Notes: generated by a model not told the origin, from the sequence alone. Shown: positions 13,792 through 57,727, counted from the stretch's first letter. The stretch: 64,000 nucleotides of DNA from Gracilinanus agilis (GCF_016433145.1 NC_058130.1:255413771-255477770); one strand, 5' to 3'. Numbers and translations are program-made.

Positions 13792-15445
13792 CTCGATAGC
13801 ATTTTTCATCACAAGTCTTTTGGAGTTGTCTAAACAATGACTTTTTTTATAAAAAAGAAAAAAACCAACTCAATAAAACTAAACATCAGACTGCATCTGA
13901 TAATATATACAATATTCCATAGGCATAGTCCCCCACCCCACCCCACTGCACCCCATTCCCATACCTGTCCTACAGTAAAGGGACAGAAGTGTGTTTTCTC
14001 CACTCTTTTCTGAAGTCAAGCTTGGATTACATAGTATGAGGGGTTTTGTTGTTATTCTTGAGGGAATACTCATTTGCTCAGCAAAATAGAAGGCAAGGTC
14101 ATGGCAAAGCCAGCATTTTAATTGTCTTCTGACTGAATTTATTGCTGCCTCTCTCAGCCAAGGGGGGGCAGGGTGCAAACCCAGGAACAAAGGCAGCCCA
14201 AACAAAGTTATGGCAACTTACTAGTGTAAGATGTATTTGGGGCACAGTAAGGGGAACAGTTTTTATGTGATGTGGGGTATTTGTAGGTGAGATATGTGGA
14301 AATATTAGTTAAAGGTCAAACTATGGAAGGCCTTGGAAGTTAACTTGATGCCACATCTTGTGGCACAGGTGCTATCTTTACCATTTCCATTTTACATAAG
14401 AGAAAACTAAGGATGTGAGAGGTTAAGTGATTTGCGTAGGGTTCACAAAATTAGTGTCTAGGAAGAATTTGAACCCAAATCTTCCTAATTCCAAGTCCAA
14501 TCCTCTGAGCATTATATTTTATCACTTAACTGCCCACTGAAGAGAAAGCCATTGACATTTCCTGAGCAACTGGGAAGACCTAATCAGAGATATGTGTTAG
14601 AAAGATTAATGTGGCAGTGGGTATAAGATTAAGGAAGAGACTGGAAGAAGGAAAATCAGGTAGGAAGCTATTTTTTGTTGTTGGTAAGTCAGGTCTAACT
14701 CTCCATGACCCCATTCTTATGGGGTTTTCTTGGTAAAGATATTAGAGTGGTTTGCCTTCTTCAGGGGCCCCATTCTACAGTTGAGGAAACTGAGACAAAC
14801 AGAGATGAAGTGACTTGTCTAGGGTTACATAGCTAGGAACTGTCTGAGGCTAGATTTAAACTCAGGTCCTCTTGTTTTCAGTCCCAATGCCCTATCCACT
14901 GAGCCACCTGGCTGCCCCTAGGAAACTGTTAGAATAGTTCAAGTAGTTATAATGAGAACTTGGATTAGGCTATTTTATACATGGGAATAGAAAGGAAGAG
15001 ACAATGCGAGAGATATCAGTGGTGTAAAATTAACAACATTGAGGGACTAAATGTATGTTGGATTGAGGAAGAGGAAAAATACAATGATAATCTGAGACTT
15101 CAAGACTTTGGTGTACCCAACAGGGATAAGGGAGTTGGGAGGTCTTTAACCACAAATTTGACACGTTTTGTTTTTATATCACATTCATTTCGAGAGAGTC
15201 TATCCCCTTTGCACTTTAGTGAAACTTCTCTTTTAACAAAAATTAATAAAGCAAAACCAGCTAATACATCAACTCATGAGAGTGTTTATAAGTGGCACAA
15301 ATAGGTCTTGGAATCGGGAGGGCCTAAGTTCAAATCTAACTTCAGACACTTCATAGTTGTTATATCCTGGGCAAGTCACTTAACCCCCGTTGCCTAGCCC
15401 TTACCCTTTTGTCTTAGAGTTGTTACTAAGATAAAAAGTAAGTGG

Positions 15446-16576: not shown

Positions 16577-23301
<6,725 letters not shown>

Positions 23302-23545
23302 CACTTTGGTAGCAGAGCATGGTTAGGGAACAGGGAAGTTGAGTGACTTCAACACTGACACTGCTAAACTCTAGGACTAACATTTTGGGAGGAAAAATGG
23401 ATCCCAACATGCAGACTCTGGCTCATTTCTATCTATGTCGGCTTCATCACTCGTCAACTATATACCATCATTATACTTAATGAATATATCCATCATTTAT
23501 ATTATTGTGTCAGCTTAAAATGTGGCTACTCTGGGGTTGACTAAA

Positions 23546-23551
23546 AATAAA
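23546..23551 (+). terminator. Probable SLC5A2 polyadenylation signal
   Basis: First AATAAA after the SLC5A2 stop codon, about 245 nt downstream. Confidence 0.65.
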
Positions 23552-23767
23552 ACTCATCACAGATCTGGAGAGTCCAATGTAATTTAAAAAATGGTAGCAC
23601 AGATAAAGTACTCCCGCCTAAAGAAAACAGAAAAGTTGATGACATGAGAGGTTCTTTTGTTGACAGTGGCTCAGTTTCTCTAGAAACCTCCTTATTCCCT
23701 TGATCCATCTCCAGAGCATTCCTGGTCCCCATCTGGCCTCATTTATATCCAGGTGACAGCAGGGCAT

Positions 23768-26700
23768 TCACAAAGTCTTCTTCTGCAAGGGCCACGTGGC
23801 TCGCCACTCATCCACCTCCAACAGATGACGCTCTGTCTCCCAGCCTACGGCCTGTAGATCTGGTGGGAAAAGGTTCCTCATAACCCACTGAAGGACTCTT
23901 AAATCTATTACCTAGGCTCTCAACCCCTCCCCACTTTAAAGCCAAGGAAGCAAGTTCAGAAAAAGGAAGTGATTTGCCAAGGTCATACAATGAGTAAGTG
24001 GAAGAGCCCAGATGATTAGAATCCAGCACCCTCAAATTTTCAGTTCAGGATAGAATGGTTAAAGGAAGGAGTGTGGATCATATTACCTTTCAAGAACTTG
24101 GGGTAGAGTCTATCAAGGATTTGGTAAGTTTCCTTGACAATGGTCCAACTGTCTCCTTTAGGGGCTATGGAGCAGAAACAATAACCAGGGTGAGCTCCTC
24201 CTCTGAACTAGCCCTTCTCTCTTCCTGCTATGCCCTATATAAAACCCTTAACTCTCACCTGCCCTGATTTGACCCCTCAGGGTTTCCAGCTCTTCCATAA
24301 GGGGCACATCCTCCAACAGAGTTGCCAGCAAAAGTCCATGTGTCGCTGCCCTCAGAATGACCCCAGCATTTACTTCCTGGCCCAAAGTCACCTGTATCTG
24401 ACCTGGAGAGATAGAGGTACAAGGTATGGTCTGGCACATTAGTCTCTAGGGCACACCTTAGGCATTCCTCTACGTCTTTGCTCCTAGAGTGCCTTCCCTT
24501 CTTCCCTGCTCATCCCTCAAGGCTTTACTCAAATGCTACCTCCACATGGAGCCTTCCCCAATGGCCTTAGTTCACACTCTATTCTTTCCTCTTTGAACTC
24601 CATTTATTGTCACATTTGACTATTCCACTAGTGGCCTTTAGCTTACATTTTTGGGTTCATTAGGTTTGTTTTTATGTGCACATATCTCCCCAAATTCATT
24701 TGTAAGATCCTTGAGGACAGGGATATGGTTTACACTTAATTGCTTTATACAAGTGCTTAATAAATTAACTGCCTGCCTGATAACCAGACTGGAAAATATC
24801 TTTGGAAGAACAATTACAAAGATCTTGTGGAGAAAGAAAGAGAAGTGAGTAGTGACTGCTATATGAGGGGAGATAGAACAATTGGGTTTCTTCTGATTGG
24901 AAAGATGAAGACTGAGACAGAGATATGATGAAAGCATATAAAGTCATATGGAAAAGGCAGATTTCTTTCCCAAATCTTTGATTATAACAGAGAAGAGTCC
25001 TACTGGGAGCTATGAAGTCTACTAAAAAGAAAACATATAATCATTTGGATGGGAGTAAATTCGCAGAATTTGAAACCCGAAAAAGTCATATAGCCAAGAA
25101 AAATGTGCATTTACACATACACACTTCTTTCTAAGCTGTAGCTTAGGAATTTACAGCTCCATACTCATAGCTGGAAAGGCCTTTAAAAGTCAATGAGTTC
25201 ATGATCCAGCCATTCTGGCTGGCAATTTGGAATCATGCTCAAAGGGCTATAAAAGAATGCCTTCCCTTTGATCCAGCCATACCATTGCTGGGTTTGTACC
25301 CCAAAGAGATCATAGATAAACAGACTTGTACGAAAATATTCATAGCTGCGCTTTTTGTGGTGGCAACAAATTGGAAAAGGAGGGNNNNNNNNNNNNNNNN
25401 NNNNNNNNNNNNNNNNNNNNNNNNNNNNNNNNNNNNNNNNNNNNNNNNNNNNNNNNNNNNNNNNNNNNNNNNNNNNNNNNNNNNNNNNNNNNNNNNNNNN
25501 NNNNNNNNNNNNNNNNNNNNNNNNNNNNNNNNNNNNNNNNNNNNNNNNNNNNNNNNNNNNNNNNNNNNNNNNNNNNNNNNNNNNNNNNNNNNNNNNNNNN
25601 NNNNNNNNNNNNNNNNNNNNNNNNNNNNNNNNNNNNNNNNNNNNNNNNGGGGAAAGGTGGAGCATGAATCATGTAACCATGTTAAAAACGAATATTAATA
25701 AATGTTAAAAAAAAAATTAAAAAAAAAAAGAAAAAAAAGTCAATGAGTTCATATATCATGAGCTCACAATGGCTGGCACATTCATTTCATACTTGTAGTC
25801 AACTAAAATCAAGTCTTTTTCACACAAACCACTGTCAAGTGAGGTCTCCCTAATCTTGTAATAATGCAATTTAGGCCTTTATATCTATTCTTGATCACTT
25901 TCTTCTGTTAGTTTTAGTCTGTCTTACGGCCCTGGGTTACAGAACACTAATGGTCTTTAAAATAATAAAATTTCATATTACTCAGAGAGCAAGAAACATA
26001 GAGGAGCAGGCTACATCTTCCAATCTTCCTGAAATCTATTCTACATACCTGATGGTTCAGACTCTACCTAAACACTAAAAACAGTGACAGGGAATTCAAT
26101 TACTCCTGAAGCAAATTGTTCCACTGCTGGACAGCTTCATACATTAGAAAATTCTTCCTCACTGATGAATGACCACAGACTGAAGCATTACTTTTTTTAC
26201 TTTATTATTCTTGGATTTTGTTTTGGGATTTTGTGTGTGTGTGTGTCTTTTTTTGCAACATGGCTAATATGGAAATGCTTTGCATGACTTCACATTTATA
26301 ATCGATATAATTTTGCTTGCCTTCTCAAAGGGTGAGGGAGAGAACTTGGAACTCAACATTTTTTACAAATTGTTAAAAAATTTCAAATTGTAATTGGGAA
26401 ATATTTAATGAAATAAAAATTTAAAAATATGTACACACACATATATATGAAAAATTCTTCTCTATGATAATTTGAAATCTGCCTTTTTGGAGCTTTTACT
26501 CTTAATAATCTTAGTAATGCCCATAGGAGCAACACAAAACAAGTCTCTCCCCTCCTCTTCCCCCCACCCATGAAAGTCCTTGAGATGCAAGGCACCCCAA
26601 AAGCCTTATTAAAACTTAAAACTATAACAAATGCTTTTGAGATACCCTAAACACCATTGTAGCCCTTTAGGTCTCTCTCTTCCAGGATAGTCTATTCTTA

Positions 26701-43525: not shown

Positions 43526-43996
43526 ATGGCTCTTCTTCAGTCAAATCAGGATGTCATTTCCTCAGCAATGCAGGAGTTTAGCAAATTGCTGAATCAGCAG
43601 GTGAGAGGGGTCCTTTCCTAAGCACCAGGAGATATAGAATATCTTGGCTTTTGGAAATAAGGTGGGAGTTTGATGGAAAAACTGGGGGATAGGAAATGTA
43701 GCTTCTGGGAGATGTGTAGTGACTAATGGGAAGTTTGAGTGCCTGGAGATCAGCACATCTGAACAGCAACCTCCTCTCTCTCCTTTTGCCAGGATTACAC
43801 ATACCCTATAATCTCTGAGAAAGACATGGTTACCATTGTAGATGACTGGATGAACTACTACCTTTCATACTTCTCGAAAAAGATGACAGGGGATCAACAA
43901 GAACAGGAGAGAGCCATGCAAAAACTTCAAGTGGAACTTCAATCTTCTGCCAACCCTTTCCTGGAGAAGTACAGAGCCTTTCTAAAATCCCTTTGA
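43526..43996 (+). CDS. AHSP: Alpha-hemoglobin-stabilizing protein, 92 aa
   Basis: Exon 43526-43600 encodes MALLQSNQDVISSAMQEFSKLLNQQ. Exon 43793-43996 encodes DYTYPIISEKDMVTIVDDWMNYYLSYFSKKMTGDQQEQERAMQKLQVELQSSANPFLEKYRAFLKSL*. Colinear with human AHSP, same 75-nt first coding exon, syntenic after RUSF1. Absent from the ORF track because it is spliced. Confidence 0.96.
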
Positions 43997-45883: not shown

Positions 45884-48800
45884 GGCTAGGCAATGGGGGT
45901 TAAGTGACTTCCCCCACATCACACAAATAGAAAGTGTCTGAGGTCATATTTGAACCCAGGCCCTCCCATCTCTAAGGCCATTTCAAGTGCTTCCTCCCTT
46001 GTGATCTTCAGGTCTATAAAGACCTTCCTTCTTGGATCAATGACCAGCTCCTTGAGAGCAGGGACCATGTTTTTTGGCTATTTTAATAAATATTTCCAGT
46101 GTTTATCATAGTGCCTGAGACATAGTAGGCACTTAATAAATGCTTGTTGATTGCCTCTCCAATGTATTTGATATTTAAAGCCCTCCACAATATGATAGCT
46201 GCCTACCTTCCCAGATACTTCATATCACTCTCTTCTATGTACACAATAGTGATGGGGGGAGCAAGGAGAGAGGGATGGGGGGTGGGGTGGGAAATGACAG
46301 GCTAAGGGCAAAGGCCAGAAGAGGATCATTTCCATTTAGACATTGTGGAAAGGAGCACCAAGAGATTGAAATGGCAAGTAATAGAGGAGAAAAAGATTAA
46401 CTTGGAAAAGAAATGTTCAAAAAGGACTTTGATCATAGAAATGGAAAAGATGGAATGAAGTCAGAAGGGAGGAAATAGGTAAAGTCTCCTAATATCAGAG
46501 GGTGTCATATTCCATACAACCACCAGATGGTGAAGCAAGACTATGGTTGAAGTCTCAGAAAGCTAATCCTGGGGGGCAGGAAAATCATGAAATTTAGGAT
46601 ATTAGTGCTAACAAGAAATTTAAAGATTTTCTAGTCCAATATTCTCATTTTATAAGGTTAGAATACTGAGGCCTTTGACTTGCCCAAGATCATACATCCA
46701 ATTAGTAACAGAGATTATCTACACTTTGTTTTCTCTTTAAAATGATGACTAAGGAAGAGACTAGAAGAGACAATATAGTATAATACAATGAGCACTAGAT
46801 TTGGAGCCAGAAGTCCAGAACCTGAGTTTGAGTGAGTGTGTGTGTGTGTGTTCCTCCCTCAATTTCCTCATATGTAAAATGAATTCATTGTGCTAAGTGG
46901 TTTCAGATGTCTCTTCCAGCAACTAGGGACTTATAAAATGAACAAACAAAATAATACACAGAAGACTGTGATAAGGGAAAAGAAGTGATCCATACAAAAT
47001 GCCATAAGACAACTTTGGAAGGTCACAGCACTATAGCTAGTTTTACAGGGAAAGTATCATGGAAGGGGTAACACCGGAGGTGCATTTTGAAGGACAAGAA
47101 GGATTTTTGACAGGTCACAAAGGATAGATTGGGTAGACATACAGAAATACCAAAATGTAGGACAAGGTCAAGGATTAACCAGTAGCCCAGTGAGACTGGA
47201 ATGTAGAGTGTATGAAGGAGAGTAGTGTTAAATAAGGCCAGAGAGGTAGGTTAAAGATTATCTAGTCCAATATTCTCATTTTATAAGGTTAGAACACTGA
47301 GGCCCTTGACTTGCTCGAGATCATACATCCAATTAGTAACAGAGATTATCTAGGTTGGAGTATCATTCTCACAGTTTCTCTTAGCCTCCTTTGCCTCAGC
47401 CATCGATAAATGGCAATCAGAGATGCAACTAGGGGGAGTAGGGATGAGGAAAAGGATGACTCCTTAGCTGCACTGAAGATAATACAACTCGGGGTGAATT
47501 CACATTGGTAGAAGAAAAGGCTCAGATACTAGAGAGTCTTGCCACCAAGAGTTTGTTGAAGGAGATAGAAGGCAAATCTCATGATGATGAAAGGAGCCTG
47601 GGAGTGGCAGCCAGGGGCCAGGTGAAGTAGTAGGGTCATGAGATTTAGTGCAATCTTGTTGTAGATATCAAGGCACAGGAACAGTGGTCTACAGACCATC
47701 ATCAAGAGGAAACATCCCTCCACAGGAGAAAGTGTGTTCCCCTATGTGTCAGCACCATGAGGAAAAGTTCTAAGTACCTCACCTTAGTTTCAGCTCTACT
47801 CTCAGATTTAGAATTTCCACTGAATGACTGTGGAATACCTCATAATATCGGGACAGAAGTTAAGTCTAGGGCACTAAAGAAAAACGTTGTCAGTAGGATT
47901 CCCAAAGTAATTGCCCCAATAAAACAATTTTTTTATTTAAAATTTTCATTTTATTTTTGAAAAATATTTTTCCATCTTCCCTCCACACTTCCAGAGCCGA
48001 CAAGCAATTGCACTAGGTTGTACAAATGTTTTCATTTGATACCTATTTCCACATTATCCATTTTTACCATAGAACAATCTAACAAAACAAATTTTGAGTG
48101 AAGTCTTCAGCTCTGAAATCTCAGTCCAAGGATCTTCCCAGACTTCCAGTAACCATACAAAAGGAAAGAAGTCTTCTGCTTCCAAGAGACTGTGGTTCCA
48201 TCTAAAGCGTATTTTACCTCATCTTATGATGACATAATATCAGACTGCATTAACTGGGAAGCCGGGACTTCAGAGTGTGTGACCTGCTGAGGGGGTAGGA
48301 TCCTAACCTAGTGACAATTGGTTTCCATATGTAATTGGCATGACAATATGAGGCAGGGTTGGTATCTTCATCCTACTATTCACCCTGCATGACAACACTT
48401 TGACATGTTGCAAAGGAAGTTTTCCAGAATTTTTTAGGTTATAGGGTCTACGAATAAGGGAGAAAATGGGGAAAGCAGGGTACCTGGGTTTTGGAGAATC
48501 CTACCTTATATCACTTTGTCCAAGCCTCATAACCCAAAATACCTTGAATATACTTTGTCTTTGCCAGCCTTCAAGTCTCCTGTGTTCCATCCCTTTCTTG
48601 TTCATAACTGGTCTCTAAGTACTTTGAGTTGCCCTCAAGGGTTTGTATCCCAACTTACCTTTGTATTTACAAAGCCTAGCACATTACTTATACATAATAG
48701 GTGCTTAATAAATGTTGTATTAAATTGGTCATCAACTTTCTTTGGCTACTTATTTATCTCTATTCTTGATGGTTCTGTTGATATATTGGGTCTTCCTGAA

Positions 48801-50252: not shown

Positions 50253-50771
50253 GAGTAAATTATATTATTATTATTATTATTATTTTTGCTTCCTCATTTA
50301 GTAAATATTTCATGTTTAAGAATCAATGGTATTATTAAGACTGATTTTATACAAATGAAAAGAACACTTTTTTGGGCTAAGGAACTATAGTGGTGGTTTT
50401 CACCCTACATCAAAATTACTCCTAGTCTCCTGTCCCTGATAATGAGTATATCAGTGTAGTGGAAGACATGGCTAGCCCTCCCATTCTGGGAAAATGAAAA
50501 CAAAAAACTACACAGATTTGCCTGTTTAAGTTAATGTTGGGATGAGTGAGCCAGGACAGAAAGTGTGAAAGCCTCTGCACTAACAACCTAAAGAAATAGC
50601 ATTAATTCACTGACTCTTTTTAGACTATAGCCTGTTTCAATAAATGCAAAGCTTCCCTGATTTAATGTTTATAATCCTGAGACTTAGCACAATATTTTGC
50701 ACATAGAGTTGACTAAATTTTGAAATTTAATCATTCATTTCTATCATGGACATCTGAATCAATGTGTAGGG

Positions 50772-50834
50772 TTTTTTAAAACCCTAATCCTCTGTCTCAG
50801 AATCAGTATTATGTGTTGGTTCCAAGGCAGAAAG
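50772..50834 (-). mobile_element. SINE 3'-tail fragment supplying the last codons and stop of the RNF112-like gene
   Basis: Minus strand reads ttctgccttggaaccaacacataatactgattctgagacagaggattagggttttaaaaaa. This matches the tails of SINE copies in this window, e.g. about 20339-20395 and about 56709-56767. Confidence 0.85.
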
Positions 50835-53800
50835 AATTCCCACTATACCACCAGCTAACGCCAGGATGCCAACTCCCACAAGTCCACCTAGGGCAGAAGT
50901 ATGGCCACAGAAACGCATTTTGTAGGAATCCTGGAAGTCCTTAGCTTTTTTCTGAATCTCTTTCTCAAAACTGTCCATAAGTTGGCTCTTCCCTGGGCCC
51001 TTCAAAGTCATTCTGAGATTATTCAAGACAAGATCTTTCTTAGTTGAGAGGCGTTTCCACATGTCTTTAGGAAGAATCCTCACAGCACCAAACATGACCT
51101 TTGTGGAAGAATCCTGAAAGTATGGAAGAAAAAGCTGTGGTTGCTGACTGAGCACCTTGGCATTCTCACCCTGAGCCCAAGTCTTTGCTATTCAGATTGC
51201 TTTTATTTTGAGAATTCAGGTATCCTTCATTTCAGTTCTCTTTCCCTGTCTAGATGAACTCAATTAATTTTTTCTTTCTCTAAAAAAAAAAAGTTTTAAT
51301 GTTGCCTTTTATTTTTTTATATCTCATTCCTTTTTTACAAAGGTATGCCCTTCCTCTGGCACCCAACTTACCAATTTCATCTGATAGTATATGCAGCATT
51401 CTATACCCATACTTTCCCATGCCTTCAGTGAAAGGTAGAAGCCATGTTTGATCATTACCATTATGGACAGAATTCAGGATGGTTGAGTGGAGACCAATGA
51501 TTTTATTTCCTTTGCCTGCCTTTGCTTCTGACTCAAATTCATTTGTAGCTAAGCCAGAGAGGATATTGGAAGTTTGTTAAATTGTCCAGACCCTAGATAA
51601 TGATCTATAATAGAAAGCTTAGGATCCTAGGCCAGTCATAGGGTCAAAAAATAAAGACCTATCTTTTAAAATCTTAGCTTGAACAGTCTTCATAGATTTT
51701 GTCTGGGTGTAGTAGCTAGTCAACAAGCATGACTAAAGAATTATCAGTCAGTCCTTATCAGACAGAAGTTTTAACCACTATTCCCTAGCAGAATTAATTT
51801 GAAGTGGCTAAGTTGGCTCTGAAGAGATTTTAGTTACCAAGGGAGACAGGAAATCTAGTGGAGGAGCACCCATAGAGAGGAATTCTGGCCTAGTAAACCC
51901 AGTAGATTCACCAGAGGACATCAGAGATCACTTTAGAATATAGAGGAACAACTAACTGCCTCTGATGCTTTAAGATCCCTGATGTGCCCTGGTGAATTCA
52001 TGTGTAATAATAATAGCTGTGCATGATCACTCAGGTCATATGGATATTTGTATGATAAAATACCCTACATTCATGGAAGGAATATTTTATTAGTCTTCTA
52101 ACTCTGCTATTTCATTTAGCACCTTTGCTATGAACTAACTATATCCTCTGGATGACTAGGGAAAAAGTAGAAATATCAATGGGAATTTATGAGTTGTTGT
52201 GAGTATCTTGAATCTGGAGCAGATTCTTCTGGGAAGCCCATATGTAAGAAGGACAATTAAAATTCTGAAGGCTTACCTGTTCCTTTATGAAGTCCTCCAA
52301 ATCTTTTGTAGCATCTTTAATCCTCTTCACATTGTGGAGGTCAGTAGCCATCTGTTCAATGAAAAGAAAGCCCTCATGCATGTTGCCTTTCATTCTCTCC
52401 ATTTTGGAATTCTGTTCCAAGTCCCTCACCTACCTTTATTTCCTACTTAAACCTACTCCAACCCCATGTTCTCTTGAAGACAGATACTGACTCCTTAGAC
52501 CTGTTTCTCTTTCTAGAATTAAAATCCTTCCCAGAACTAATAGGCAAGACTCTACCGAATCAAGTGAGGAAGAGAATCCAAATTCTTTCTTCTTTACCAG
52601 GTCAGAGAGTGTCTGCAGATAAATTCAAAGGGACAATTAGAAGTTACAGAAGAAGGGACAGGTAGGTATAAGATTCATGGAAGTTGGAGAAGTTGCCCAT
52701 ACCGAGATCTTCTCAGCTAATTCTCTACCAGTGAGAAAATTCTCAAATGACCATTCTGCCACATTCTGGATAGCTGAACTGCAAACATCTGTGATGTAGG
52801 CATGTAGATGCTCATAGAAATCTGGGTCCATGTCTAAGAAAGAGAATATTTGTGATCCTGGGAAATTCCAGTAGCTAGGAGTAAGGTGGCTGGTGTTTAG
52901 AAGGGAATCAGAATGTTGGTGAGGGGAGATCAATTACACTTTGGGAAGAAGTTACAGGGACTTCTGGATAAAGAGGAAGTTACCTTCTGGATTTGCATTG
53001 CCATTGCATGCCACTTTTTTCCCAGGAAATGGCAAGAGGTAGCAGTGGATTTGTTTACTCCTAAATGCCTTCTGAATCCTGGGGTATTTGTCAGAGATTT
53101 TCTAAAGAAAAAGCAAGACCTCAAGAAGGTTTCAACCAGGCTTCAGGTGGTAGCTTCATTCCTATGCCCTCTCCCTTTCTGAATGTTCCATTACTACTTT
53201 TTTTTCCTCCCTGAACCCAGGCTTGATGTCCTTCTTTCCTGCCACCCTCCAAACAGCTGACAAATTGATATGCTTAAAGCACAGGTTCTATAAATTAATC
53301 TCTATGGCTTTCTTTTGACTCTGGAATTAAATACAAACTAGTTTGTTTGGTATTTACAACCCCTCACAGCCCACCTTTCTAAGTCCTTTATATTTACTGC
53401 TCTATATATACTCTATGACCTAGCCAAACAGGTTGCTCTTCCTTGAATTTGCCATGTCTCTCCCTCCTTACAACCATCTCAAATGACTCCTCCTAAAGGA
53501 GGCCTTTCTGATTCAACCCAATTGTTAGCATAGATTCTGTATATACTTATATGTGTACCTATTGTCTCTACTACCACCACCATGAAAATTTAAGTTCTTT
53601 AAGGGCAAATTTTTTGCTTTAAATTCAGCCTTCCCTAGGGTACAGGTCCTGCTCAATAGTAGGCATTTAATTCATGCTTATTGAATGAATCAACCAATGA
53701 ATCAGTTGACAAATGTTTGCACTTGCCTGGATCACATCATTCATGTGTGCTTGGCCTGCTTCCTCTCCAAACGTTGCTGGATAAAACCAGTCCCGAACTA

Positions 53801-54017
53801 AGAGATCCAGATGCTGAAAAAGAAGAAAAGGTAAGACAGTTTGACAAGTGGATTCTAGAGGGGGTTGAAGTCTCAGGACAAATGAACTGGACAAACAGTG
53901 CCTCACCTGTATTGGTTTCATCTCAAAATATTCTCCTATTTCTTCAGCAATGTGGAGGAACATCTAGTAAGCAGATACAAGTTAGGGCACTTCTTGTCAC
54001 AGAACCAAGGTATCCTT

Positions 54018-54061
<44 letters not shown>

Positions 54062-56467
54062 AGTCTCTTTGACTCCACAAGAGAAACTACTGGTTCTCAA
54101 AGTCACACTCTGAAACCAGGCATTTTATATCCCTGACTTAGTTCTTTAGCTCATACCATTTCTTCTCTTCCCCTTGTTCTGCTGGAAGTTCAAATGTATG
54201 CTCACCTCCAGATGTTCCAAATCTGTTTCCTTCAGCATCCGAGAGACATTGAGAATCTAGGGAACAAGGAAGACAGGGAAACAGGGAGGAAAGCCAAAGG
54301 TAGGAGAGGTGATCACCTGATTCCTGAGAGTTTCAGAAAGCAGGAACTCTAATTTTTAGAACAGACACATTCTCAGAGTGGGATTATTACATCTTATGAG
54401 AGAAGAGGTCTTTTTTCCTAAGGCAACATCAAGAACCTTTTAGCGAAATGGTCCTCTTCCCTCTCTTGGCCTCTGTGAAGAGATCAAACCTTTTCTAGTA
54501 GAGTTAGGGGATACTTTTAAAATATTGCCTTAAGGACTCTTTAGAGCTAGGACTTATTAAATAAAATCATAGAAGTTAGAAGAATTAAGCAATCTTTTTC
54601 ACCAAATACACTGTGGCTGATTCAAATTCAATCTCTCTGATCTAGAAGTCTCATTAATTTTTTTACTTATACAACATATACATCAATTATATAATGATTA
54701 AAAAATGCGAATCATATCCACTTTTATGGATTTTAACTAACCATTCATTCCCAGTTACAACAATATAGATACCAATCCTATCCCATTAAGGCAGTACACT
54801 GGAATAGCTTTTGTAATTTTCTTTTAGAATCTAGATAATGAAAGTATTTTCACCATTCCTGTTTTGTTCAGTGCCCGAGTAACAATTCAAATCTGGCCTA
54901 AAAATCCTAGTAGGTCAGAAATGAGCTAGAAGGGGAACTGTCTGAGAGAGAAGAACCCACAGGCTAAGGAACAAAATGCCTGGGTCCTAGGCTTTCACCT
55001 GAAAGGAGCTGAGCAGCATGGTGAGAGCAATGAGTTTGGCATTTGTTTCCTTGTCTGTTTCTAGACTTATGGTCCCTTCTGTGTCCACAAGAAATACAGC
55101 CACCTAAAGGATAGAGGGGAGAACCAGGGCATGAGGTCAAAGTTTCCCTGTGGCCCTCTCATCTTTCTGCCCTTCTTCCCTCAGAACTTTCTCAATTCTT
55201 CTAACCTTCACCTACCTGTCTTCCCTCAGTTTCTCTCCTCTCTTTCCTCTCTTATTTTCCCCACCCCTACACCCACCTTCCTTCCTCTTTTCCATCATCC
55301 ACCTCTTACCTCATTCTGGTTTTTGCCTTCCACTTTACAACCTCCCCAGTTCTGTCCTTTTACCTCTTTCCCCTTCTTCTTCAGAATAAATGGCTGGCTC
55401 CATATCCACAGGCCCTTGGTGACACTTTGGGCTCCTGGTTCACACTGGAACCCCTGAAGAGCTCTTCCTTCTTTTATCCTCTGGGGATCCTTGGACTTTT
55501 GAAGAGAAAGAATGAATCATTTCTCCCCATGACTCAAATATCATATATACAAAATTCCTCCTTTAGAACCCATTTTGCTCTCTTTTCAAAAACCAGGTCT
55601 GGATCTCTTAACCTTGAGCTTCTTTCAGAGACTTTCTGCCTCAACTCATTTCCCTTCTTCCCATGTTCCTGTCCTCTCCTCTCCTCCACTGTCTAGGCCA
55701 CAGAACCCCAGTCCCAGATCTTACCAGACTCTGCAATTCTTGGATTAGATAGTTGAGAAGGAAAGACTTTCCTGTTCTTTGCTCCCCCACGACAGAGATG
55801 ACACAGATTTTAGTATTCCTGACTTGAGGGTGATTCAGACACTGAGACAGAACATCTAGATTGAGGGTGAAATCCTTTGTGGAGTTAACTTGAACCAACT
55901 GCAGAGGTTTTGCCTCTACATTGGAAACATCATAGGGGTTCTGAGGAGAAGAAGGAAAATTCTTTAAACTTCTTAATCTTCTTGGACTTGACCATATAAT
56001 GAAGGAGTTCCCCTCCTGTCATCCTAACCCGTCTAGAAAGAACCCAAAGTTCACTTATCCCGAATTAGGCAAAAAGCAATTGGTAAGTGTTTGCTTTGTG
56101 GGAGACACTCTGCTAATCAGTCCCAGAAACTCATGAGACTATAAAGCCTCAATCTCTGACCTGGTTTGGGTTTGTCCTCTGTTGAAGGGAGTTCATTTTC
56201 TCCAACAGACTCCGGAGTCGAGTGTCTGGAACTAGCTGACTCCTGTCACACCTTCTACGGCACTCAGGGCAGTGAGGTGGTTGGGAACCTGGAACACCCG
56301 AGTCCCAATGACAGGTGATACACTGAGCACAGAAGTTGTGGCCACATTCAATGGAGACAGGATCCCGGAACAACTCCAAACAGATGGAGCACGTGAGGTC
56401 AGACTTCAATAAATCCAATGGGTCAGTTAAAGTGCTCAGTGAGGGGTTTCTCACAAGGAAGCTGGAT
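50784..56467 (-). CDS. RNF112-like RING finger plus atlastin/GBP-family large GTPase (divergent paralogue; 5' exon(s) not resolved; at least 554 aa)
   Basis: Exons: 56467-56161 (C3HC4 RING, CSICLELFRDPVSIECGHNFCAQC...CPEC), 55940-55725 (P-loop GEQRTGKS), 55495-55364 (VTKGLWIWSQPF), 55103-54999 (VAVFLVDTEG), 54256-54206, 53963-53907, 53813-53727 (HLDLLVRDW, GC donor), 53101-52984, 52833-52703, 52612-52556, 52351-52277, 51113-50784 (DSYKMRFCGH plus hydrophobic segment). No frameshift or internal stop. Exon pattern parallels human RNF112 as I recall it. Confidence 0.9.
54021..54058 (+). repeat. (CT)n microsatellite in an RNF112-like intron
   Basis: Directly visible. Confidence 0.95.
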
Positions 56468-57558
56468 CTAAAGATGCAGAAAGCAGTGTTGGAGAGGAGA
56501 ATGTCTAGATGTAGGAAGGGCAGTAGGAGATAATGTGGGAGCTGGGATCGTGGCTAGAATTTTAAGAGGGAAGGGTAGGGGGCATCTAGGTGGCTCATAA
56601 ATTGAGGGCCAGGCCTAGAGATGGGAGGTCCAAATCTGACCTCAGACACTTCCTGGCTCACCTACCCTGGACAGTAACTTAACCTTCATTGCCTAGTCCT
56701 TATGGTTCTTCTGCCTTAGAACCAATACACAGTATGAATTCTAAGAGAGAAGGAAAGGGTTTCAAAAGATGGAGAGAGAGAAAAGTGAGTGGGAACAAAT
56801 TAAAGTAGATTATTTTGATATATAATTTCTCTTTTTAATCCTTCTTCATAAATCTCTTTCTTTGTGGATTGCTGTGGCAAGGAGAGATTATTAAAGAAGT
56901 AGAGAAGAAGAATTCCTATTCTTCTTGATCTCAGATGAATTTGTTTATTATAGAATATTAGAAATAAAAGGAATATCATAGGTCTTCAGTCTGACTTGTC
57001 ACCTAATGCAGGAATACCTTCTTATAGCACTATCTTCTGTTTGAATATTTCCAGTGATAAAGAATTCCCTACAGATCAAAGTAGACTATTTTCTTGTTGG
57101 ATAGCACTAATTTTTACAAAATTCCTTTTTATATAGAGTTGAAATTTCACTGACTGGTAGTAATTTTGCCTTCTGTAAGAGGCCACAAAGGAGAAGATTC
57201 TTTCTTTTCCATAACTATCCTTTCAGATATTAGAATACAACTATCATGTTTCCCCTAAGTCATGACTTGTTCAGTCTGAACAACCCAAATCTCCTTCAAT
57301 CTGGACTCATGATTGAACATTAACTATCACTTCTACTTACAAATGGTCATTTCCTTTTTCCATCAAGAAGGATTTTTATGTCTTTGAGAAGATGAAATAG
57401 AAAAGTGACAGAGACACAAGATAAAATAGTTAGTGCTGAACCTTGGCATCCCACAACTCCCTCCTTCTGTCCCCCTCTCCTTTCTCCTCCTCCCTCCCTC
57501 TTTTTTCTTCCTCCCTTTCATCTCTTTCTTTCTTTCTTTCTTCCTTTCTTCCTTTGTT

Positions 57559-57727
57559 NNNNNNNNNNNNNNNNNNNNNNNNNNNNNNNNNNNNNNNNNN
57601 NNNNNNNNNNNNNNNNNNNNNNNNNNNNNNNNNNNNNNNNNNNNNNNNNNNNNNNNNNNNNNNNNNNNNNNNNNNNNNNNNNNNNNNNNNNNNNNNNNNN
57701 NNNNNNNNNNNNNNNNNNNNNNNNNNN
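57559..57727. other. Assembly gap
   Basis: N run inside a pyrimidine-rich SINE tail. Confidence 1.

Follow-up and report, generated by a model that had tools for sequence, protein, structure and literature searches.

A stretch of 64,000 nucleotides from the genome of the marsupial Gracilinanus agilis (hereafter the window) carries, next to the gene for AHSP, a multi-exon gene encoding a RING finger followed by a dynamin-superfamily GTPase. The family it resembles, RNF112, is marked by brain-enriched expression and by GTPase and E3 activity. An initial annotation of the window read the gene as an old duplicate distinct from RNF112, possibly with a role in innate immunity, and the question is whether the locus is such a paralogue, RNF112 itself, or something else. 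Here we argue with good confidence that it is one member (copy B) of a tandem RNF112 pair, that the marsupial RNF112 to which the pair belongs is orthologous to the eutherian gene, and that copy B is probably decaying.

Gene structure and domain content

The 12 exons proposed initially were confirmed by a check of splice sites and reading frame: they span exactly 50784-56467 on the minus strand and are in frame throughout, with AG at every acceptor and, among their donors, ten GT and a single GC (GCAAGT). The joined frame holds one stop, at its end. The description of the gene as intact and multi-exon holds, but its true start had been missed and its C-terminus is not normal for the family. 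What was taken as the first exon (56467-56161) begins in mid-codon and contains no ATG, and a 13th exon of 23 nt at 57363-57341 supplies the start (MEKGNDH then TT, donor GTAAGT), giving a product of 562 aa. This ATG exon matches the Tasmanian devil gene in place and context, and that gene has the same 13 coding exons, including an exon 1 of about eight codons and the GC-AG intron. An assembly gap (57559-57727), about 200 bp upstream of this ATG exon, separates copy B from the place where the other member of the pair (copy A) is annotated.

All exons are on the minus strand. Exon 2 (56161-56467), delimited by its splice sites, encodes a C3HC4 RING finger (Pfam zf-C3HC4_4, E 4.3e-10; zf-C3HC4 also matched) with all eight zinc ligands, in alignment columns conserved across vertebrates. 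A GBP-type GTPase (PF02263) follows on exons 3-5, starting in exon 3 (55725-55940; E 6.5e-8) with the G1 P-loop GEQRTGKS and its arginine finger, continuing in exon 4 (55364-55495) with switch I and the G2 threonine (TKG), and reaching the G3 motif DTEG in exon 5 (54999-55103); the RefSeq model takes a NAGNAG alternative acceptor at 55498 for exon 4. The G4 motif LVRD is in exon 8 (53727-53813), directly before the GC-AG intron. Exons 6 (54206-54256), 7 (53907-53963), 9 (52984-53101) and 11 (52556-52612) were defined by splice sites and frame, and exon 10 (52703-52833) differs from copy A by three codons (EWS), with a 9-base gap at 52748. Exon 12 (52277-52351; 75 nt, beginning ATGGCT, phase 0 at both ends) encodes helix 1 of a last three-helix bundle, and the family-homologous part of exon 13 (50835-51113) encodes helices 2 and 3 and a first hydrophobic segment; the end of the open reading frame with its stop (50784-50834) is derived from the tail of a SINE. 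An AlphaFold2 model of the corresponding segment of copy A (XP_044513478.1:416-521), to which copy B is nearly identical, predicts three helices with pLDDT 92, and in a structure search the modelled bundle matches RNF112 crystal structures.

The RING finger with its full set of ligands, the complete GTPase and the helical region described initially are borne out by Pfam, motif alignment and the bundle model, and the claim of a hydrophobic C-terminal segment stands for one segment, the first, with the conserved ~60 residues beyond it absent. Copy B thus has the RING, GTPase, arginine finger, gene structure and clade membership of RNF112/neurolastin together with a predicted three-helix bundle, and it lacks the complete C-terminal hydrophobic region and charged/amphipathic tail of the family.

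A recent tandem pair with one truncated member

Copy B corresponds to the RefSeq 'RNF112-like' model XP_044535562.1, with 100% identity in the exons common to both; its identity to copy A ('RNF112', XP_044513478.1) is 97.6%. Copy A is annotated 7.4 kb upstream, with copy B starting 7,388 bp downstream of it on the same chromosome record; the comparison of the two draws on proteins, read-contig differences and RefSeq coordinates across the assembly gap. In a maximum-likelihood tree the copies form a clade supported at 100/99, with a terminal branch of 0.028 for B versus 0.012 for A, and the first exons differ, reading MEKGNDHL in copy B versus MENRNDHL in copy A and in other marsupials. Copy B arose as a tandem duplicate later than the split from Monodelphis, and this very recent event, within Gracilinanus, is the sole duplication found.

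The clearest difference between the copies is at the 3' end. Homology of copy B to its relatives stops near 50835; the stop and the 12-17 codons before it are SINE tail, 50780-50832 being 88-91% identical to other SINE copies within the window. Of the hydrophobic C-terminus only the first segment is left in copy B; a second, Gly/Ala-rich stretch and a charged tail are gone. Conservation of this missing part extends from coelacanth to mammals, and copy A and all other marsupials have it; the conserved C-terminal ~60 residues were found nowhere in the 64,000-nt window. A deletion probably removed the end of the last exon and joined the remainder to the tail of a SINE lying downstream. The junction at 50835 is supported by a DNA run (X1) possibly made from the same sample as the assembly. 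The RefSeq model of copy B ends in an alternative 3' exon (47532-47741, minus strand) encoding 70 aa unrelated to the family.

The initial annotation had suggested estimating dN/dS and checking expression. Against the Tasmanian devil, dN/dS is 0.445 with dS 0.40 (546 codons), which shows purifying selection in the marsupial RNF112 lineage. Spliced RNA was seen of copy A only: a spliced contig in which exons 12 and 13 meet at the predicted junction (51112/52276) is of copy-A type, and the RNA contigs X2/X3 carry exactly the residues of copy A and run on into its C-terminus at 50835. No RNA covered 50700-50834 and no B-type RNA was seen in two small RNA runs, assembled into contigs that drop rare variants, and copy B may be expressed after all. 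Since B-type RNA was not seen there and the terminal branch of copy B is the faster one, copy B is most likely redundant and in the first stages of decay; an intact frame says little in a copy of this age.

It seems unlikely, by comparison, that copy B functions as a gene with a new specialisation, which with a single hydrophobic anchor or the alternative RefSeq C-terminus could serve another membrane or regulate copy A through GTPase-domain heterodimers. In favour of such a role, RNF112 works as a GTPase-domain dimer, and experimental exchange of its anchor relocates the protein (PMC12012479); the full open frame of copy B, valid sites at all 12 introns, the retained catalytic and zinc-binding residues and the 3' exon of the predicted RefSeq transcript, which could give a functional variant, point the same way. 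A copy this young, however, would be expected to have an intact frame even if selection were absent, and the segment that was lost is the deeply conserved one. Copy A was present at depth 8-12 in the same two runs that yielded no B-type RNA, and the branch of copy B is about twice as long as that of copy A.

Less probable again is an assembly artefact, in which a second haplotype of a single RNF112 locus, a truncated allele, was placed in tandem across the gap of Ns. The divergence of the copies outside the 3' end is low enough to resemble heterozygosity, the gap comes 200 bp before exon 1 of copy B, and in run X1 the contig graph forks at about 50938-50967, its B-type path having depth 31 versus about 48 in the gene body. 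However, SINEs are the only sequence shared by the A-B spacer and the 3' flank of copy B, so that the copies are very unlikely to be haplotypes of a single locus. The 6.3 kb from the gap to the end of the window, where the 3' flank of copy A is expected, contains no AHSP copy, whereas the flank of copy B carries AHSP at a wallaby-like distance. The differing first exons and the 11 of 72 bases that differ beside the breakpoint likewise argue for two loci.

Orthology and genomic neighbourhood

With copy B as one member of a tandem pair, the relationship of the pair to eutherian RNF112 can be read from a maximum-likelihood gene tree of 45 proteins (LG+C20), which mirrors the species tree. The marsupial clade is sister to eutherian RNF112 within the mammalian clade, with support of 100/100 for mammals, 100/100 for marsupials and 86/44 for marsupials plus eutherians, a weak therian node. 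Among the best 120 of 367 matches there is one lineage per marsupial, often named plainly 'RNF112' in RefSeq. The phylogeny thus identifies marsupial RNF112 as the orthologue of eutherian RNF112 (neurolastin). The initial annotation had set its reading against a 1:1 orthologue that is the only RNF112 in the genome; the tree bears out the orthology, and the status as sole lineage comes from those best 120 of 367 matches only. Its argument that similarity is too low for a marsupial orthologue does not hold, as the marsupial protein is 43-45% identical to eutherian RNF112 and equally distant from the proteins of echidna (45%) and snake (42%). Long branches account for this low identity, and within the therian pair the eutherian branch is the longer (0.60 versus 0.33).

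The location beside AHSP is real and is common to the wallaby. Copy B adjoins AHSP tail to tail at a distance of 6.8 kb, and the wallaby order is RUSF1, AHSP and, 7.1 kb on, an RNF112-like gene, so the position is old within marsupials. Marsupial RNF112 has AHSP/RUSF1 as its 3' neighbour and a 5' side empty of annotation within 10 kb; in the squamate Rhineura, MFAP4 lies 3.6 kb from RNF112. Human RNF112 lies in a 17p11.2-type neighbourhood, that of MFAP4, and is not known to adjoin AHSP/RUSF1.

An old DNA-level paralogue, specific to marsupials or lost in eutherians and with a function of its own such as GBP-like innate immunity, would fit the identity of only 43%, the neighbourhood that is unlike the eutherian one and conserved across marsupials, and the 'RNF112-like' of some RefSeq names, but it is highly improbable because the marsupial genes group as the sister of eutherian RNF112 in a mammalian clade with 100% support, and because the best 120 of 367 matches include no second marsupial lineage, echidna and reptile identities are just as low, the exon structure is shared with the Tasmanian devil gene, and GBP-specific features are absent, the sole match being the shared GTPase-domain profile.

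Catalytic features and relatives in the superfamily

Like eutherian RNF112, the marsupial protein has the order RING, GBP/atlastin-type GTPase, helical middle domain and hydrophobic C-terminus, and the two share a pre-anchor motif Y-x-x-R-F-C-G-H; copy B differs in being without the last ~60 residues. They diverge in the active site. The P-loop arginine at the position of Xenopus R195 occurs in all marsupials, echidna, reptiles, newt and coelacanth in our alignment, whereas primates and rodents have histidine at the finger together with DTGD; the marsupial protein has kept the arginine finger, the switch-I threonine and DTEG. In Xenopus RNF112, R195 is essential for GTP hydrolysis; human and mouse RNF112 are weak GTPases because canonical G2/G3 residues are missing, and the histidine finger and DTGD have been tied to this weak activity (PMC12012479). 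Since marsupial RNF112 keeps the canonical residues lost in human and mouse, it is likely to be a better GTPase than the human and mouse enzymes.

The closest structural reference is Xenopus laevis RNF112 (PDB 9jju-9jjx; PMC12012479), which is matched by the GTPase exon and by the last helical bundle. The two proteins have canonical G1-G4 motifs and an arginine finger in common, from which the same catalytic logic would be expected, and the predicted marsupial bundle superposes on the crystal structures, although the sequences are distant (~21-23% in the bundle). By analogy with the frog protein, the GTPase domains would dimerise in the transition state and a swing of the middle domain would be coupled to membrane remodelling, with RING-mediated ubiquitination possibly proceeding alongside.

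The P-loop exon finds its best PDB sequence matches in atlastin (E 2e-7) and RNF112 (2e-6). Atlastins (ATL1-3, Sey1) also share C-terminal membrane anchoring, and the ATL1 three-helix bundle is matched in Foldseek; they are, in contrast, without a RING and have two clear transmembrane helices. Membership of the atlastins was rejected, as a RING is present, the full-length relatives are all RNF112 proteins and the likeness is limited to GTPase and bundle, RNF112 being a family of its own. With GBP1-7 the protein shares the PF02263 match, GxxxxGKS, the arginine finger and RD motifs, but the PDB matches are far weaker (E 0.14-1). GBP membership was likewise rejected: Pfam gave no GBP_C match, and the closest GTPase kinship is with atlastin and RNF112. 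The suggested GBP-like immune role finds no support in a protein on the RNF112/atlastin side of the superfamily.

Probable kinship of AHSP and RNF112

An unexpected result concerns the neighbouring gene. AHSP is encoded on the plus strand by coding exons at 43526-43600 (75 nt, beginning ATGGCT and ending CAG|GT, with an acceptor 4 nt upstream) and 43793-43996 (beginning GAT, 67 codons plus stop), and the encoded protein shows 100% identity to G. agilis AHSP. It is a free-standing erythroid chaperone without RING, GTPase or anchor and is only ~21% identical to the RNF112 bundle, yet the whole 92-aa protein aligns to that last three-helix bundle. An hhalign comparison of 33 AHSPs with 73 RNF112 segments gave a probability of 94.5% (P 8e-8) over 92 columns, end to end, with a score of 45.6 versus at most 16 in reversed and 30 column-shuffled controls and an identical register in every taxon subset. 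AHSP was also the Pfam family most frequently matched by the RNF112 segments (23 of 73; next family 11), and its chains were the top PDB matches of the RNF112 bundle after RNF112 itself, at a marginal E of 0.014-0.05.

Gene structure and fold agree with the profile alignment. In both genes a 75-nt exon running from ATGGCT to CAG|GT (phase 0) is followed by a last exon starting GAT, and the exon boundaries coincide in the alignment, RNF112 exon 12 being the counterpart of AHSP coding exon 1. The RNF112 segment model superposes on crystal and NMR structures of AHSP with a TM-score (by target) of 0.71-0.77 and an rmsd of 2.1-2.9 Å over 87-88 residues; Foldseek gave a probability of 0.95-0.98 for the same comparison, with E ~1, as is usual for small helical bundles.

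RNF112 can be traced back to coelacanth, and AHSP is therian in all 120 matches listed, with 65 more beyond these. No AHSP was found within 10 kb of RNF112 in echidna, turtle or squamate; in opossum and wallaby the two genes are neighbours in opposite orientation. AHSP probably arose by inverted duplication of part of RNF112, its last two exons, and in marsupials still stands beside its parent.

Results

RNF112 is a young tandem pair in Gracilinanus agilis

The RNF112-like gene beside the alpha-haemoglobin stabilising protein gene (AHSP), here called copy B, lies on the minus strand, and translation of 50500-56800 with anchored exon ends yielded 12 exons whose outer coordinates (50784-56467) match those of the initial annotation exactly. 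All acceptors are AG, the donors comprise 10 GT and one GC (GCAAGT, after 53727), and the joined reading frame has its sole stop at its end. In Pfam searches, exon 2 of copy B is a C3HC4 RING finger and exons 3-5 form a GBP-type GTPase domain, and a PDB sequence search placed the P-loop exon nearest to atlastin and Xenopus RNF112. The multi-exon gene with RING and GTPase domain described by the initial annotation was borne out, together with its outer coordinates; its start was not, and its C-terminus proved abnormal and derived from a SINE. The first of the 12 exons begins mid-codon and has no ATG, and a 23-nt start exon on the minus strand (57363-57341, encoding MEKGNDH plus two bases, donor GTAAGT) had been missed, bringing the complete model to 13 coding exons and 562 amino acids. 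The GCAAGT donor after exon 53813-53727 (window 53726-53725) opens a GC-AG intron common to Gracilinanus and the Tasmanian devil (position 13875 of the devil locus, L002). A (CT)n microsatellite at 54019-54060 in intron 6, where contigs from one read run (X1) break, is irrelevant to the gene.

A phmmer search with the last exon of copy B as query returned only 14 proteins, headed by a Monodelphis 'RNF112-like' protein. The spliced copy B is 97.6% identical to G. agilis RNF112 (P0015, XP_044513478.1; here copy A), 82.6% to Monodelphis, 65-71% to Australian marsupials, 45% to echidna, 43-45% to eutherian RNF112 and 42% to a boa. Clustered with P0015 at 90% is another G. agilis protein, P0133 (XP_044535562.1, 'RNF112-like'), which matches the window gene at 100% across shared exons and departs from the present model at three points only: a 5' extension by read-through, a NAGNAG acceptor and another 3' exon (47741-47532). 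No placement was found in the window for its first 32 residues. The tandem acceptor, at 55495-55498, gives the RefSeq model of copy B one extra Lys that is absent from both the copy A model and ours. According to the chromosome record, the P0133 gene begins 7,388 bp downstream of P0015, and the AHSP encoded in the window matches that of G. agilis at 100% identity. Copy B is thus one of a tandem RNF112 pair, a young copy of the marsupial RNF112 orthologue already predicted by RefSeq, with copy A just past the window end; a search of the window found no further RNF112 copy inside it.

That the pair is an assembly artefact, a second haplotype set in tandem, is improbable. An assembly gap at 57559-57727, and a comparison of the two copies that covered proteins, read contigs and RefSeq coordinates, leave a little room for such an error, but the 6.3 kb from the gap to the window end, expected to be the 3' flank of copy A, shares SINEs alone with the 3' flank of copy B and holds no AHSP. 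In the copy B flank, AHSP lies 6.8 kb away, a spacing like that in wallaby. The echidna also has two near-alike RNF112-like genes on one chromosome (L004, P0008/P0026; terminal branches 0.044 and 0.043), which are a separate recent duplication.

Copy B has lost its C-terminus

Aligned with copy A and other marsupials, copy B loses homology at about 50835, after which a dozen unrelated residues lead to a stop. The roughly 60 conserved residues that follow this point are present in every other family member compared, from coelacanth to mammals, and a search of the whole window for this missing coding part found it absent. The stretch that takes their place, 50780-50832, shares 88-91% identity with the 3' ends of other SINE copies in the window. 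Because what remains of the element is only its last ~55 bp, in sense orientation, an insertion seems less likely than a deletion that fused the exon to a SINE lying downstream. The last 72 bp before the junction contain 11 differences from copy A, 7 of them non-synonymous, against well under 1% in the remainder of the gene as judged from read contigs, which suggests either that gene conversion has acted across the gene body or that the end of copy B was rearranged in a complex way.

The region is present in three public G. agilis runs (X1, X2 and X3). Depth in X1 is even across introns, as for genomic DNA, and this run contains the B-type junction; the other two, X2 and X3, are small with patchy coverage. 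A spliced contig in X3 joins the last two exons (51112/52276), and its differences from the window translate to exactly the copy A residues and extend into the intact C-terminus of A. Neither X2 nor X3 covers the 3' end of copy B, so in these small runs spliced RNA was seen for this type of gene, through copy A, and none for copy B in particular. Copy B is probably on its way to decay.

The marsupial gene is the orthologue of eutherian RNF112

A maximum-likelihood tree (LG+C20+F+G4, 45 proteins, 629 columns) gave the topology coelacanth, newt, (squamates, turtles), (echidna, (eutherians, marsupials)), with support of 100/100 each for mammals, eutherians and marsupials and of 86/44 for therians. 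Branching among marsupials agrees with their phylogeny, and copies A and B are sisters at 100/99. This placement of the marsupial clade as sister to eutherian RNF112 lends no support to the initial annotation, which had read the gene as probably an old paralogue in view of its low identity to human RNF112; there is only one marsupial lineage among the matches listed, no second one appearing among the best 120 of 367. Stem branches measure 0.65 for echidna, 0.60 for eutherians and 0.33 for marsupials, so that the eutherian stem is about twice the marsupial one and the low identity to human reflects fast evolution, mostly on the eutherian side. Among the matches listed, the gene is plain 'RNF112' in RefSeq for most marsupials. 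The best 120 of 367 relatives include squamates, turtles, newt and coelacanth and no bird, crocodilian or teleost, and archosaurs may be without RNF112.

The devil gene shares all 13 exons with copy B, as well as the donor of the first exon and the GC donor. Compared with it by the Nei-Gojobori method, dN/dS is 0.445 (dS 0.40, 546 codons), with regional values of 0.37 (RING), 0.42 (GTPase) and 0.58 (helical part). Marsupial RNF112 is constrained yet fast-evolving, the ratio describing the whole marsupial lineage and not copy B itself.

In Xenopus RNF112, the P-loop arginine finger R195 is essential for hydrolysis, the GTPase domains dimerise in the transition state and the middle domain swings; membrane remodelling has been demonstrated in ER-targeted anchor chimeras, and the weak GTPase activity of the human and mouse proteins is explained by their lack of canonical G2/G3 residues (PMC12012479). 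The finger Arg, switch-I Thr, DTEG and RD are kept in all aligned marsupials, echidna, reptiles, newt and coelacanth. Where marsupial RNF112 has the finger Arg and DTEG, primate and rodent RNF112 carry His and DTGD; across the eutherian sequences P0042, P0053 and P0035, the finger Arg is replaced by His in primate and rodent, DTEG by DTGD or DTGG, and the switch-I Thr is variable. In these alignments, marsupials and echidna retain the ancestral GTPase residue set, and eutherian RNF112 is the one that has lost canonical residues. As the finger Arg, switch-I Thr, DTEG and RD are all kept, catalytic competence is predicted for marsupial RNF112, copy B included.

The position beside AHSP is old

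AHSP (43526-43996, plus strand) and copy B (minus strand) stand tail to tail. The wallaby has RUSF1 (UVB_sens_prot), AHSP, 7.1 kb and then an RNF112-like gene, oriented as in the window, so the location next to AHSP first remarked on is both real and old; several further marsupials carry AHSP and RNF112 on one chromosome. Searches of the window with AHSP (tblastn) and with 10-kb devil, echidna and turtle flanks (tblastx) gave transposon matches only.

In the amphisbaenian Rhineura (L005 41772-48198, 1-4843), MFAP4 lies 3.6 kb downstream of RNF112 (E 4e-48 to human MFAP4) and a trypsin-family gene precedes it. MFAP4 also adjoins RNF112 at human 17p11.2, so their linkage looks ancestral to amniotes. 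On the 5' side of marsupial RNF112, the nearest 10 kb hold no annotated gene; if marsupials keep MFAP4 on that side, a simple break between AHSP and RNF112 in eutherians would be implied. The turtle Pelodiscus has a prostasin-like protease as the downstream neighbour of RNF112 (L006 25051-26978). Its best match, prostasin, scores barely above enteropeptidase, too weak to establish a 16p11.2-type neighbourhood. The Rhineura and Pelodiscus neighbours hint that 16p11.2-type and 17p11.2-type genes were once together around RNF112.

AHSP resembles the helical bundle of RNF112

In an RNF112-like protein of a turtle (P0058), a match to the Pfam AHSP model passed the gathering threshold. A gene-model fusion betraying turtle synteny was considered and rejected: the matches fall on RNF112's own repeats, in the last helical region, so the synteny argument was dropped and a lead to homology gained. 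In turtle RNF112-like genes (Pangshura tecta L001 ~18037-25052; proteins P0058, P0028, P0073, P0085), the helical segment of the last exon occurs as 2-4 tandem repeats, and a turtle genome holds several such genes; the segment that seems to be the source of AHSP is duplication-prone in turtles.

Profiles were built from 9 and then 33 therian AHSP sequences, and from 22 full-length RNF112 sequences and then 73 excised segments. Their comparison aligns AHSP residues 1-90 to the 95 RNF112 residues before the hydrophobic anchor, with a probability of 91-95% and P of 1e-6 to 8e-8. In window coordinates, AHSP at 43526-43996 (plus strand) corresponds to 52351-50835 of copy B (minus strand). Reversed templates and 30 column shuffles never scored above 16, against 45.6 for the real pair, and the same register was obtained with marsupial-only and eutherian-only AHSP profiles and with each RNF112 taxon subset. 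Run against 177,635 PDB sequences, RNF112-only profiles placed Xenopus RNF112 on top; with 21 sequences the next six matches were all AHSP chains, at marginal E values of 0.014-0.03, and with 73 sequences two unrelated chains interleaved with them. Among 24,736 Pfam families, AHSP is matched by the most RNF112 segments (23 of 73; runner-up, 11). Across ~230 kb from seven loci in six frames, the AHSP profile recovered AHSP and the last exons of RNF112, and otherwise two very weak matches at E 3.5 and 7.1.

Gene structure and fold agree with this register. Coding exon 1 of AHSP and exon 12 of RNF112 are each 75 nt long, start with ATGGCT and end on CAG/GT in phase 0; the last exon after each starts with GAT, and the boundary coincides in the alignment. 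In an AF2 model (pLDDT 92), the RNF112 segment folds into a three-helix bundle that matches RNF112 crystal structures and the atlastin-1 bundle, and it superposes on AHSP structures with TM 0.71-0.77 by target and rmsd 2.1-2.9 A. On this evidence, we consider it probable that AHSP is homologous to the RNF112 bundle.

Discussion

The most interesting outcome is that the birth of AHSP from RNF112 seems to be recorded at this locus. The direction of derivation is probably from RNF112 to AHSP, since RNF112 is ancient and 120 of the 120 AHSP matches listed are therian. An attempt to date AHSP by its closest RNF112 subgroup was uninformative, the eutherian, squamate and turtle subsets scoring alike. 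We propose that AHSP arose by an inverted duplication confined to the last two exons of RNF112, and that the tail-to-tail arrangement of marsupials is ancestral. The duplicated part would be the atlastin-type three-helix bundle of the RNF112 middle domain, and the event would have occurred in a mammalian ancestor; copying the 3' end of the gene in inverted orientation would give exactly the marsupial layout. Marsupials would have kept the arrangement of birth (RUSF1, then AHSP and RNF112 converging), and eutherians would have moved the parent RNF112 and the daughter AHSP to different chromosomes, so that the position initially called non-syntenic would be the ancestral therian one. We regard this full scenario as reasonably likely, with less confidence than the homology itself. 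In the literature searched, no paper linked AHSP with RNF112 or RNF112 with marsupials, and none proposed any origin for AHSP; the sole paper naming both AHSP and atlastin is irrelevant to the question.

For copy B itself the stakes are modest, the reading of a new E3-GTPase family member being corrected to an RNF112 orthologue and its young, shortened copy. Marsupial and monotreme RNF112, with the canonical catalytic residues missing from the human and mouse proteins, offer natural material for asking what purpose the GTPase activity of neurolastin serves. If the proposed origin is true, AHSP, the medically relevant erythroid chaperone of free alpha-globin, would be no orphan three-helix protein; a domain would have been cut from a dynamin-superfamily membrane remodeller by partial duplication and re-used as a soluble chaperone. 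It would also give the reason for the adjacency of RNF112 and AHSP in marsupials, and provide a clean case of a new gene springing from the 3' end of the gene beside it.
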